Source of the DNA: Magallana gigas
Lineage: Eukaryota
Direction of reading: 5' to 3'
Assembly: GCF_963853765.1 (NCBI RefSeq)
Contig: NC_088854.1
Location: 11,718,001 to 11,782,000 of the forward strand
Length of the DNA: 64,000 nt
The notes beneath the pieces were generated by a model. That model worked only from the letters and a program-made list of their open reading frames with translations, was not told the DNA's origin and did no database searches. Numbering within the stretch: the stretch's first letter is position 1; each line of letters opens with the position of its first letter. This document shows positions 27,749 to 30,700 of this stretch, in pieces. Position numbers and translations under genes: made by a program.

Positions 27749-30700
27749 GTTACCTGTAGGAATTATGATTGAACTTGTTGTAACTTCCAAGCGCTGTTAG
27801 GGCACCAATGGCAATTGAATACGAGAAGAAAATTTGAGTTCCCGCATCAACCCATACCTAAAAATGTGAAATTCTTTAATAAAGATGCAGCATGTTATAA
27901 TGAAAAATTCAAAATAACATAAAAACTCAATCTGCATGGAGATTATGACAATAAATTTTTGCTGGGTTTCTCATTTTTATCTATTATTAATTAGCAGATC
28001 TGACGTTTAAGCGAAGCAAATATATTCCGGTATATATAAAACATATAAATGAATTTTTTTAATGTTATTGGAAAACTAAACAAACGTAAAAAGTGAAATT
28101 GCAGTTAACACCAGAGTATAAACTCGCGCAGATCCAGCTGTTATCCCTCACGGGGATCCAACCTATTGACCCAATGATATGCTGTCACGCGAATAATTAA
28201 CAATTCGGAAACCCCAACAGTGAAATTTAGAACCATTCAAATGATAATTATCCACAATTCATCGAAAATTTAAATTGAAAATGAGACACTGGGACTGTTT
28301 AAGTCGTCACAAAATGGCTGACCTCTGATCGAAACGACATTTCGTTTTATTAAAAGGATTTTATCGATGTTAACATGTAACATACTGAATAGCCGAGTGG
28401 ATAAAGTGTCAGGCTTGTGATCCGTACAACTTGAGTTCGAATCGCGAAGGGGCTTTCGTTTTTTTCTTACTGAACTGAATTTTTTAGATATTCATTTTTT
28501 ATCTCCAATCTGCAAATTTTTCGCTTATTTGACATATGTACAGTTTATTTATAGTTGTATCTTCATAAGCAAATAATTTACTGTTAAGTGACTATTTCGA
28601 GGTGTGTTATTCCATCGTAAAATACTTCACAATATTTCACGTCCAGTAGGCATGATGTTCACAAAGTTTAGAACTATGGTACGTCCTTAGTACGTCCTTA
28701 GTACGTCTTAGGATACGTCTTAGTCTAAAGTATGTTTCTCGAAGCTCTTCTTAAAAGGTTATAAAATCATGTTTTGGGAATCTTTGGATTTTTGTTAAGA
28801 CCGGTAAATAGAACAATCTTTTTTACAGCTTCGGCATTTCCGACAAACATCCAATTCTTAATCCGGGAGGGGGACATAGTAATTATTCTATCTTGTACGT
28901 TTGTTTTAACATAATCTATGTGGAGAGAGAACCCGAACCCCGCACCTTCATGGGAGCTAACAAATTAAACAATTTCTTTTTTGGTGTTTTTTTTTTGCAA
29001 ATACTGTCTCTGTTTGGCAAAAGAAAATTATTCTTTTATTCCAAATATATACACTAAATAAGTTACATTCATTGTTTTGATTACTACTAATACTAGTATA
29101 GGTAAAATAAATTCAAATGTCCTTGACTTAAAGGGTAAATCTACATCGGTTTATATAAGAGTAATGCATGATCATTCTTAATTTTTATCACCTCATTCTG
29201 AAAAATAATCTTTAAAAAATTCGTAATGTATTTTCGAGATCGATTACAACTTATTTCTTATTTAACCTGTACGTGTATTCTATATATTGCAGATTTAAGG
29301 GTAATTGGTTATTTTTGTACGTGTAACGTTTTTAATGAAAAGCGCGTGCATATGTGTTACTTGAATGACAAAAGTATCAAATGTTGATTTACACTCAAAG
29401 AACACACACGAATAATTGTTGTTTAAAGAATAATAATATCTGCTTGTAAGCCGCCCTGATATATATTTTCCATACCAACAAAAATACCCAGTAATAGTTA
29501 TTTGGATTTCTGTTTTTTTTTAAAACCATAATTGTTACTGTTCACTGAAATACCGGTATGTCTAAGTAAATAGATTTAAAATTAATGGTTTTAGGTCTAT
29601 CGTGTTATAGATACCTGTAATTTTCTGTGGCAAAATGTTAAGGTAATGATTTATCCCTGAACAAGTCACTCCAATTTTATCTGAACGAATTGAAGTGAAA
29701 AATAAGAATGATTTTAGTAGGTTAGAATATCCTAACTTAGATTTTCCTAAGTTACTGTCGAATTACATTATTGATCTCAGGATGTTGCTAACGTTTTTCT
29801 AAGTCATGCCTGACACACTTAGGTCATGTCTTTATAGGAAAACATGAACATTCCTGCAGGACTGTAAAATGATCTAAGCTGGATCTGCATTGGTACACTC
29901 TTTATAAGCATCTACATTGTCAATACACAAAGATAGAACTATCATTTTCTCCTTATGTTAACAGAATGATTTGTATTTGATTAAAAGCCTTATATAGCTG
30001 AATATGTGAATAAAGAATTTACGTTGCATAAACACCACTTTCTTTTTATCTTTTAATAGTCATAAGCTGTTCGTCATGTTTTTATTGGTTCTTATTGCTG
30101 ATTACAAGAAACTAGTGTAAGCCTTTTTCTATTAAAAAAAAGCAAACCTTATAAAATGTTAGTGCATGTAAAGTTGTAAATTTCGTGTTTAACTGTGGCC
30201 AGTGACATTGTTTCATACACAAATTGTCACTGTTGCCATAACAACAAGATCTACCTCCATGTCGTTCAGTTTTGAGAGATCTGGCTTTAAATAGAAGATG
30301 ACCCCATTCAGGGAGCCCGGAAGAAGAGCGTTCCGGATAAGCAACGCCGCCATGAACAAATATGGCGAAGTAGCAGTCACATACATGACCTAATTAAAAC
30401 GAGAAAAAGAAAGAAAATCTTCCTCAGTATTTAGTTTACAAGATTCAATATAAAAGTTTACCTCTAAATCGTTCAGTCTACTCCAATCTGGAGTTAAATA
30501 AAACAGAATTCCGGTCCTTGCACCTGGCAATAAGCAGTTTCTGATGAGGAGAGCTAACATAAAGAGATATGGAGATGTTGCCGTGATGTACATCACCTGA
30601 AATATTCAGACTTGTTGGCCATGGAACACACACATTCATACAGAAATATACCAAGCAGCAAAACTGCCAACACCAAGAAACCCCTGTCTTTGGATAAATC

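Follow-up and report, generated by a model that had tools for sequence, protein, structure and literature searches.

The locus described here raises the question of whether one oyster SLC6 transporter gene makes two proteins by using either of two homologous copies of its fifth exon and, if so, what prevents both copies from entering the same transcript. As drug targets, SLC6 transporters have received intensive study, and marine invertebrates take up amino-acid osmolytes mainly through them. The gene, which we call gene A, lies in a window (the whole stretch of DNA analysed) of 64,000 nt. We conclude that in gene A the tandem-duplicated exons 5a and 5b are very probably mutually exclusive, and that two transporter isoforms are thus made from one gene.

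Gene A is predicted to encode an SLC6 transporter

Gene A lies on the minus strand between approximately 41.0 and 22.8 kb of the window and is predicted to encode an SLC6/SNF transporter with 12 TM helices. When full-length relatives were compared with the locus exon by exon in tblastn, the matches covered residues 32-600 of a 664-aa homologue between positions 40993 and 22882 (minus strand). The exons for TM1-TM12 were all recovered, as exon-level matches. Six separate exons scored 27.9-70.5 bits against the Pfam SNF profile (PF00209), for which the cut-off is 27. All matches in the PDB were SLC6 transporters, the best being SLC6A8, GAT3, BGT1, GAT1, and TauT; the nearest solved relatives of gene A are, by sequence similarity, GABA, creatine, and taurine transporters. 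By family, the product is expected to be a sodium-coupled transporter of the amino-acid/neurotransmitter type. A search of representative sequences with exon 3 gave mostly exon-sized ORF fragments, and the best full-length relatives are approximately 40-50% identical. The exons and other elements considered below are listed in Table 1.

Table 1. Features of gene A and of its neighbouring paralog B, in window coordinates.
Feature	Position	Strand	Length	Description
Exon 6, constitutive	27754..27857	-	104 nt	TM6; 5' border ag/VWVDAGTQ...
Conserved block, candidate splicing control element	30225..30254	-	30 nt	First 30 nt of the intron after 5b; 7-bp hairpin possible
Exon 5b, downstream alternative copy	30255..30389	-	135 nt	Phase 0
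5a-5b intron	30390..30461	-	72 nt	Excision not observed in RNA
Exon 5a, upstream alternative copy	30462..30596	-	135 nt	Phase 0; TM5 and extracellular loop 3
Exon 4, constitutive	31070..31208	-		TM4 and intracellular loop 2; ends ...KGIKSSGK; 3' border SSGK/gt
Exon 5 of SLC6 paralog B, single	58267..58401	-		Comparison exon; 56-60% identical to 5a and 5b

Exons 5a and 5b form an intact tandem pair

A reading of the sequence by itself (the sequence-only reading) had described two homologous phase-0 exons of equal length, each with canonical splice sites and separated by a very short intron. The sequence bears this out. On the minus strand the borders are cag/GTGATG...GAG/gtaaac for exon 5a and tag/GTCATG...GAG/gtagat for exon 5b, so that AG and GT flank both copies, and both are open in frame 1; the length of the intron between them was also as described. 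The two exons share 33 of 45 residues and 82 of 135 bases (61% nucleotide identity), and 20 of the 33 common residues are encoded by different codons, in agreement with the synonymous divergence reported earlier. Both match the SNF profile above its gathering score (E ~1e-11), 5a at profile positions 206-247 and 5b at positions 205-247. Homology between neighbouring exons, a common length and phase, and undamaged splice sites are among the features by which a mutually exclusive pair is recognised, and 5a and 5b have these.

The genome of 564 Mb contains 34 SLC6 exon-5 homologues, and 5a and 5b are the only two that lie less than 8 kb apart. Since this is the only tandem pair among them, the arrangement is not a matter of chance. 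Paralog B has the single exon 5 that had been claimed for it.

Polymorphism is high in oyster genomes, whose assemblies can contain haplotypes that are collapsed or duplicated, so one might suppose that the tandem layout arose in assembly or from a duplicated haplotype and that the two forms are alleles. We give this explanation almost no weight. The copies are far too divergent in nucleotides, the tandem layout recurs in independent contigs of other taxa and runs, the whole 342-nt stretch including the intron is present in both RNA and DNA runs, and the 5a and 5b forms occur together within single runs.

Both copies are retained and constrained in other taxa

Two further diverged oyster-like taxa (L001; L013-L016) retain both copies, with intact AG...GT sites in the two representatives that were checked (L001 and L013). 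Orthologous copies are 78-84% identical in nucleotides and paralogous copies 56-61%, and 5a and 5b form separate clades with support of 99/99 and 91/93, respectively. Across the three taxa that carry both copies, synonymous sites are near saturation. dN/dS was 0.131/1.05 for 5a and 0.061/0.70 for 5b, giving ratios of 0.09-0.13. The family-conserved residues TATSPY, LLIRN, and FYL.PD are kept in both copies in all three taxa. These data bear out the earlier proposal that the duplication is old and that both copies are under purifying selection. The tree of 45 residues gave no date for the duplication relative to single-exon relatives, since its branches form a polytomy there. The exon pair itself is an event restricted to an oyster lineage and not one shared across phyla.

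The isoforms predicted from the two exons are equal in length and differ at 12 of the 45 residues of TM5 and extracellular loop 3 (EL3). At approximately nine of these positions each isoform keeps its own residue in all three taxa (positions 4, 14, 21, 30, 31, 35, 38, 40, and 44).

RNA contigs contain one or the other exon

We examined RNA data for the junctions that mutually exclusive use predicts. All four (31070^30596, 31070^30389, 30462^27857, and 30255^27857) were found at the exact coordinates given by the sequence-only reading. RNA contigs of 190 nt were recovered in two forms, with either the whole of 5b or the whole of 5a placed directly between exon 6 and exon 4 sequence. Both forms were present in the assemblies of X30 and X32, which come from two independent studies. 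Contigs spanning 31068-31208 link exon 4 with exon 3 on one side and with 5a or 5b on the other. Exon 6, which is single-copy in the oyster genome, is likewise joined to either alternative exon. Every junction has GT..AG borders when read on the minus strand, and the strandedness of the reads fits a minus-strand gene. Raw poly(A) reads from X21 contained all four outer junctions (three reads for 5a-6 and one each for 5b-6, 4-5a, and 4-5b), so that exon 5b is represented in this run by two raw reads.

Word depths for 5a and 5b were 65.9 and 37.1 in X30, where the flanks had a depth of 71-91, and 31.9 and 24.3 in X32, where the flanks had a depth of 40-50. In both runs the summed depths of 5a and 5b approximate that of the flanks. 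At the level of whole runs, 11 RNA runs from four studies contain 0.71 of the sampled words, as expected for both exons without the intron, and three contain 0.35, as expected for one exon. The junction of double inclusion (30462^30389), which the sequence-only reading had listed among the junctions to be counted, and the junction of exon 5 skipping (exon 4 to exon 6) were both absent from four RNA runs, as searched in contigs and six raw junction reads; Logan contigs omit rare variants, so a minor doubly included or skipped form could go unseen there. A spike in RNA depth at 28.2-28.7 kb, considered as a possible intronic RNA gene, was set aside, since the sequence there belongs to an interspersed repeat for which more than 1300 candidate copies were counted.

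Exon 5b accounts for 36-43% of transcripts in X30 and X32 and for approximately 0% in X40, which contains the 5a form alone at a word depth of 251 and is labelled as a sister species. These differing ratios between runs, one of them from another species label, are what suggests that the choice between 5a and 5b is regulated.

The exclusive use of 5a in X40 could also mean that one exon alone yields a working protein, the other being tolerated splicing noise or a down-regulating decoy that gives an inactive transporter. The alternative exons evolve approximately 20 times faster than the flanking exons at non-synonymous sites (dN 0.096 versus 0.005), as such an explanation would allow; the protein encoded by exon 4, for instance, is 100% identical in L001. 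We nevertheless consider it improbable. Frame, splice sites, and the family-conserved motifs are retained in three taxa that are nearly saturated at synonymous sites, each copy has a dN/dS of about 0.1, and the residues specific to each isoform are conserved between taxa. In X30 and X32, 5b makes up more than a third of transcripts. A truly unused copy decays, as a related bivalve (L017) illustrates with the remnant of its own, separate exon-5 duplicate.

How double inclusion may be prevented

In the mechanism we propose, each mature mRNA would carry either 5a or 5b between exon 4 and exon 6, and the outcome would be two transporters of equal length that differ solely within TM5-EL3. Exclusion cannot depend on nonsense-mediated decay, since the length of the exons is a multiple of three. 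Instead, the short intron between the two exons may leave too little space between the 5a donor and the branch site of 5b for the two to be joined. We regard such a steric block as a plausible cause of exclusion, with about even chances of being the right one. Matches to yTnAy that lie far enough from the 5b acceptor are only 11-25 nt from the 5a donor, the branch site here being read from the sequence. The strings CTAAAT and CTGAG that had been put forward as branch-like are where they were said to be, but neither matches the strict yTnAy consensus. The intron measures 72 nt here, as against 64 and 60 nt in L001 and L013, respectively. Its short length has been kept and its sequence has not, which is as a length constraint predicts.

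Exclusion could also be real and not steric. In that case it would result from regulated competition between splice sites, for example through exon-definition kinetics or through a hairpin or a factor that acts at the conserved block after 5b, and the short intron would be a by-product of tandem duplication. We hold this to be possible but the less probable account. Any mechanism needs a regulator in view of the change in 5b share between runs. At 72 nt, moreover, the intron is only slightly shorter than the shortest other introns of gene A and paralog B (approximately 82-83 nt), which are spliced, and so is not far below a size that oysters can splice. The block after 5b is invariant at 22 of 30 positions across the three taxa and could fold into a stem of 7 bp in which one pair covaries (UA/AU/GU), three sequences having almost no power to reveal covariation. 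On the other hand, the folding energy of this hairpin was no better than that of shuffled sequences, and a by-product would not be expected to stay short while its sequence diverges. The block is therefore suggestive only as a splicing control element.

No docking/selector complementarity was found around the exon cluster, where weak AT-rich inverted repeats were all that was present; this also counts against RNA pairing as a non-steric means of exclusion. The pair does not fall within the docking-selector class of Dscam and 14-3-3. The upstream intron showed no conservation across the taxa compared, which leaves the local hairpin after 5b as the single conserved element, and an Rfam scan of positions 27300-31900 returned no known RNA family. 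A steric block stays a plausible reading, and with an intron of 60-72 nt held short over deep divergence this locus is a clean molluscan candidate for such exclusion.

Possible consequences for transport

The core substrate site of SLC6 transporters is formed by TM1, 3, 6, and 8, and TM5 and EL3 lie outside it. The inner gate opens when the GX9P motif of TM5, whose Gly is encoded by exon 4 in gene A, unwinds; the outer vestibule is lined by EL3. Given these positions outside the core site, a switch between isoforms would be expected to leave the class of substrate as it is and to modulate the kinetics of gating, the affinity for ions or substrate, or regulation. The pair represents a natural, evolution-tested exchange of exactly TM5 and EL3 with the rest of the protein identical. 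Because the swap covers the TM5 that bears GX9P and the EL3 that lines the vestibule, comparing the isoforms is a ready-made structure-function experiment. The pair also adds a layer of splicing to the known expansion of the SLC6 gene family in oysters, and the 5a/5b ratio offers a concrete marker that can be compared with salinity, tissue, and developmental stage.

Other bivalves have duplicated exons in the same orthogroup. In addition to the decayed exon-5 copy of L017, a third lineage (L002 and L012) has three intact copies of exon 6, which encodes TM6. In a patch of EL3, non-synonymous change exceeds synonymous change between L002 and L012. A position at which the three TM6 exons differ influences substrate selectivity according to the GAT1/BGT1 literature. 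The doubled exon 5, the decayed exon-5 copy, and the triple exon 6 together indicate that tandem exon duplication recurs in the orthogroup. It is conceivable, if somewhat doubtful, that this bivalve orthogroup is a hotspot of recurrent tandem exon duplication that yields modular isoforms around the gating and substrate helices. If so, bivalves would diversify the uptake of osmolytes and amino acids by expansion at the level of exons and not only of genes, and the oyster choice between 5a and 5b might respond to salinity or tissue.

Comparison with known systems

The substitution of tandem-duplicated exons is a known class of alternative splicing in which transporters and channels are over-represented (PMC9741552, PMC8373072, PMC5740500). 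The main text of these tandem-exon catalogues contains no SLC6 gene. Exon 4 A/B/F of SLC12A1 (NKCC2) resembles 5a/5b in that adjacent homologous exons of equal length encode one helix plus loop and are used singly. SLC25A3 exon 3A/3B, SLC7A2, SLC39A14, and SLC8A1 are likewise tandem-duplicated exon substitutions that are ancient and conserved. The oyster pair differs from these NKCC2-type cases in that it lies in the LeuT-fold SLC6 superfamily, exchanges TM5-EL3, and is restricted to an oyster lineage. Our literature searches, which did not extend to public isoform annotation, found no published tandem mutually exclusive exons in SLC6. The matches were either studies of human or Ciona that mention the rMATS category 'MXE' generically, or catalogues in which SLC6 is absent. 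This agrees with the earlier claim that such a case had not been described for the family, as far as the literature and not automatic gene annotation is concerned. Thus, the splicing mechanism itself is of a well-known kind, and for its SLC6 instance we found no published precedent.

Steric interference has been described as a model for alternative exons separated by short introns (PMC4165533). Exons 2/3 of alpha-tropomyosin and the egl-15 and let-2 genes of C. elegans share with 5a/5b a very short intron between the alternatives, candidate branch motifs close to the upstream donor, and an exon length divisible by three, so that nonsense-mediated decay could not enforce exclusion there either. 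In tropomyosin the distance of 41 nt from donor to branch point was shown experimentally, whereas the oyster has an intron of 60-72 nt with candidate branch motifs taken from sequence. The introns of egl-15 and let-2 are 14-30 nt long, a length shown by experiment to be unspliceable and well below that of the oyster intron.

Mutually exclusive exons also occur in other genes of molluscs. The 6a/6e pair of coq-2 is reportedly conserved in this phylum. Exons 6a/6e of coq-2 are reported as a mutually exclusive pair (PMC7434440) and oyster Nav channel variants as arising from mutually exclusive exons (PMC5295241). These resemble 5a/5b in that homologous alternative exons give functionally distinct membrane proteins in oysters, from genes unrelated to SLC6.

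Within SLC6 itself, diversity usually comes from separate paralogs, of which the oyster genome has at least 34 loci, and these show the same kinds of residue differences as 5a and 5b. States that distinguish the two exons, such as PDW versus PDL or T versus K before Pro, recur among paralogs and single-exon orthologues. In contrast to the paralogs, 5a and 5b confine this diversity to TM5-EL3 within one transcription unit, with a common promoter and the remaining eleven helices unchanged.

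An exon 5 pair in an SLC6 transporter gene

On the minus strand, positions 30596-30255 read as an acceptor, a 135-nt open exon (5a), a donor, a 72-nt intron, an acceptor, a second 135-nt open exon (5b) and a donor. The two translations are identical at 33 of 45 residues and the nucleotide sequences at 82 of 135 positions, with different codons at 20 of the 33 shared residues. Each copy separately matches positions 205-247 of the Pfam SNF domain (PF00209) above the curated cut-off. Both align with TM5 and the next extracellular loop (EL3) of SLC6 transporters with known structures; the creatine transporter, GAT3, BGT1, GAT1 and TauT match best. 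Because exon 4 ends in SSGK and exon 6 starts with VWVDAGTQ, the family motif is continuous across both junctions with either copy in place. An mRNA with both would gain 45 in-frame residues, which amounts to one extra helix. A sequence-only reading had described this pair, and its coordinates and counts (exons, shared residues, intron) were all correct when re-read, as were its statements that most codons for shared residues differ at synonymous sites, that double inclusion adds a transmembrane helix in frame and that the neighboring SLC6 gene, paralog B, has one exon 5.

We modeled the gene containing the pair (gene A) exon by exon with tblastn, using full-length relatives from a representative search as queries. 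The window is part of contig 2 in a 564-Mb, 29-contig assembly, and the stretch is present in runs labelled 'oyster metagenome'. A six-frame whole-genome search found 34 exon 5 homologues, among which 5a and 5b are the only pair spaced less than 8 kb apart. No copy in this genome has more than one exon 6. In two SLC6 paralogs, the equivalents of exons 5 and 6 lie in one open frame, 7-13 nt apart, and the intron between them appears to have been lost. Two gene A introns contain long (CT)n/(GA)n microsatellites, which were skipped as repeats when reads were placed.

Coordinates of features in the window, elsewhere in this genome (G000) and in comparative bivalve loci (L numbers)
Feature	Position	Strand	Basis
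Gene A TM1 exon	about 40993-40820	minus	tblastn
Microsatellite, intron after exon 3	31284-31385		
Exon 4, 3' end	31070	minus	sequence
Exon 5a	30596-30462	minus	sequence
Exon 5b	30389-30255	minus	sequence
RNA coverage reaching into intron after 5b	28876-30371	minus	RNA contigs, poly(A) reads
Conserved block after 5b	30225-30254	minus	three-taxon comparison
Interspersed repeat	28304-28620		
Exon 6, start	27857	minus	sequence
Microsatellite, intron after exon 6	27666-27754		
Gene A TM12 exon	about 23016-22882	minus	tblastn
Paralog B	about 63.2-54.7 kb		tblastn
Paralog B exon 5, single	58401-58267		tblastn
Exon 5/exon 6 equivalents in one frame	G000:C2:23636207-23636437; G000:C5:34865940-34866173		
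Decayed exon 5 copy	L017:1230-1310		
Exon 6 triplet, orthologous SLC6 gene, another bivalve lineage	L002:2989-3894 (also L003-L011); L012:791-2208		
Truncated exon 6 repeats	L002:about 3595-3790		
Exon 5 differing in EL3-coding third	L002:2273-2407; L012:56-190		

Each copy is spliced between exons 4 and 6

In a word index, eleven RNA runs (four studies) contained a 0.71 share of the words sampled from the 342-nt stretch covering the pair, as expected for both exons with the intron removed, and three runs contained 0.35, as expected for a single exon. Shares of 1.00 in four runs and 0.97 in two fit inclusion of the intron, from pre-mRNA or DNA. This pattern is already compatible with alternative use of 5a and 5b.

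Reads were mapped to 27300-31900 from three Logan contig sets (X30, X32 and X40) and one raw-read poly(A) run (X21). X30 and X32, from different studies, each contained two 190-nt contigs. The first contains complete 5b between 24 nt from exon 6 and 30 nt from exon 4, and the second has complete 5a between identical flanks; such a pair is the graph 'bubble' expected of two alternative middle exons. The joints are exactly 27857/30255, 27857/30462, 30389/31070 and 30596/31070, the four junctions that had been predicted, and their ends are CT..AC on the plus strand, which is GT..AG on the minus strand. In X30 the depth was 65.9 for 5a and 37.1 for 5b, with flanks at 71-91; in X32 it was 31.9 and 24.3, with flanks at 40-50. 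From these depths, the two forms make up approximately the whole transcript pool.

X40 has a different species label and near-identical sequence. Here the 5a form alone was spliced (depth 251), and 5b was covered solely by an unspliced contig (depth 20). The differing mix of 5a and 5b between runs suggests regulation. A sample of about 1% of X21 gave three 5a-6 junction reads and one each for 5b-6, 4-5a and 4-5b, and in all of them the first mate maps to the plus strand, the orientation that a reverse-stranded library gives for a minus-strand gene. Neither a 5a-5b joint (30462^30389) nor an exon 4-exon 6 joint (skipping) was seen in these four runs, in which contigs drop rare variants and raw junction reads are few.

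Same-strand RNA contigs and poly(A) reads extend over most of the 2.4-kb intron that follows 5b, at a depth similar to that of the exons. This coverage likely reflects slowly removed pre-mRNA or a retained intron, although a separate transcript could also produce it. The same intron holds an interspersed repeat of about 320 nt with more than 1300 candidate copies genome-wide (82-87% identity), which in the RNA runs produces a large depth spike on both strands and numerous loose read ends.

Both copies are conserved under purifying selection

We searched each exon against a collection of exon-sized ORFs called on genomic contigs and fetched the matching contigs. Both copies were present in one oyster-like locus (L001), 64 nt apart, and in contigs from four runs of one further taxon (L013-L016), 60 nt apart. 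The L001 exon 4 and exon 6 proteins are identical to those of the window at a nucleotide identity of just 83-85%, and nearly all synonymous sites able to differ do so (pS 0.73). Orthologous exon 5 copies share 78-84% nucleotide and 87-89% protein identity, and paralogous copies 56-61%. Between the window and L001, Nei-Gojobori estimates were dN 0.131 and dS 1.05 for 5a and dN 0.061 and dS 0.70 for 5b. Since dN is far below dS in each, both copies are under purifying selection, as had been proposed. For exons 4 and 6 together dN was 0.005; the 5a and 5b proteins evolve about twentyfold faster than these constitutive neighbors. Alternative exons usually show such faster protein evolution.

A maximum-likelihood tree of 22 exon 5 peptides groups the three 5a copies in one clade (99/99) and the three 5b copies in another (91/93), and is a polytomy where these join single-exon relatives. 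About nine positions separate 5a from 5b in all three taxa (4 and 14 in TM5; 21, 30, 31, 35, 38, 40 and 44 in EL3). An unbiased scan of metagenome contigs with an exon 4 profile gave 20 more related loci, and each of the 18 that reach exon 5 has a single copy. Thus, the doubled exon, though old, is confined to an oyster lineage. The exon pair is solidly supported as real, conserved and expressed.

How joint inclusion might be prevented

Because 135 is a multiple of three, NMD could not remove a doubly included mRNA. In all three taxa the copies are separated by a short intron (72, 64 and 60 nt) of poorly conserved sequence, which points to a constraint on length. The yTnAy branch consensus matches far enough from the acceptor lie only 11-25 nt from the donor, and a branch site at a typical position could lie no farther than about 40-50 nt from the 5a donor. 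These predicted distances are compatible with steric interference, by which the short intron would bar joint inclusion of 5a and 5b. This model has been described for tropomyosin and worm gene pairs (PMC4165533), with under 50 nt as the criterion (PMC5740500). Against it, gene A and paralog B contain other introns as short as about 82-83 nt, so that the steric margin is modest. No docking/selector complementarity was found around the exon 5 cluster. Among non-coding elements, only the first 30 nt following 5b are strongly conserved, with 22 of 30 positions invariant across three deeply diverged taxa. This block can fold into a 7-bp hairpin that has one covarying pair and unremarkable folding energy, and may be a splicing control element regulating use of the 5b donor.

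Other exon duplications in the bivalve orthogroup

Another bivalve locus (L017) has a decayed, truncated exon 5 copy about 60 nt upstream of an intact one. The remnant is most similar to that locus's own exon 5, and therefore represents a separate, independent duplication; it also illustrates the fate of an unused copy. The intact L017 exon apparently has a GC donor.

L002-L011 and L012 have one exon 5 and three intact 104-nt copies of exon 6 (TM6) with AG/GT sites, a candidate three-way mutually exclusive cluster. Exon 6a diverges from 6b and 6c at 20% of bases yet only 2-3 residues, and the residues that vary among copies include one L/I/V position in the unwound segment of TM6. Between copies two and three is a small array of truncated repeats (acceptor plus exon 6 start). 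L002 and L012 are near-identical, with almost identical introns flanking exon 5, and differ in its EL3-coding third by about 11 non-synonymous and about 2 synonymous changes (dN/dS above 1). This difference could stem from diversifying selection, gene conversion or allelic divergence. Recurrent exon duplication is thus an apparent pattern in this orthogroup.

Likely function of the isoforms

In SLC6 transporters, TM1, 3, 6 and 8 form the substrate and ion sites; TM5, with its GX9P motif, opens the intracellular pathway by unwinding, and EL3 makes up part of the extracellular vestibule. Exon 4 of gene A supplies the Gly of this motif and both exon 5 copies the Pro. Given these roles, we expect the isoforms to share a substrate class and to differ in kinetics, apparent affinities or regulation.

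Comparison with known exon pairs

Mutually exclusive exons that arose by tandem duplication are a familiar class, with enrichment in channels and transporters (PMC9741552, PMC8373072, PMC5740500). Transporter genes already known to belong to it include SLC12A1, SLC25A3 and SLC7A2. Our search of the published literature found no SLC6 example, in oysters or elsewhere, in agreement with the sequence-only reading. The gene A pair is a further case of a known class. It is of additional value as a naturally occurring swap of TM5-EL3 and as one instance of the recurrent duplication that this bivalve orthogroup appears to show.
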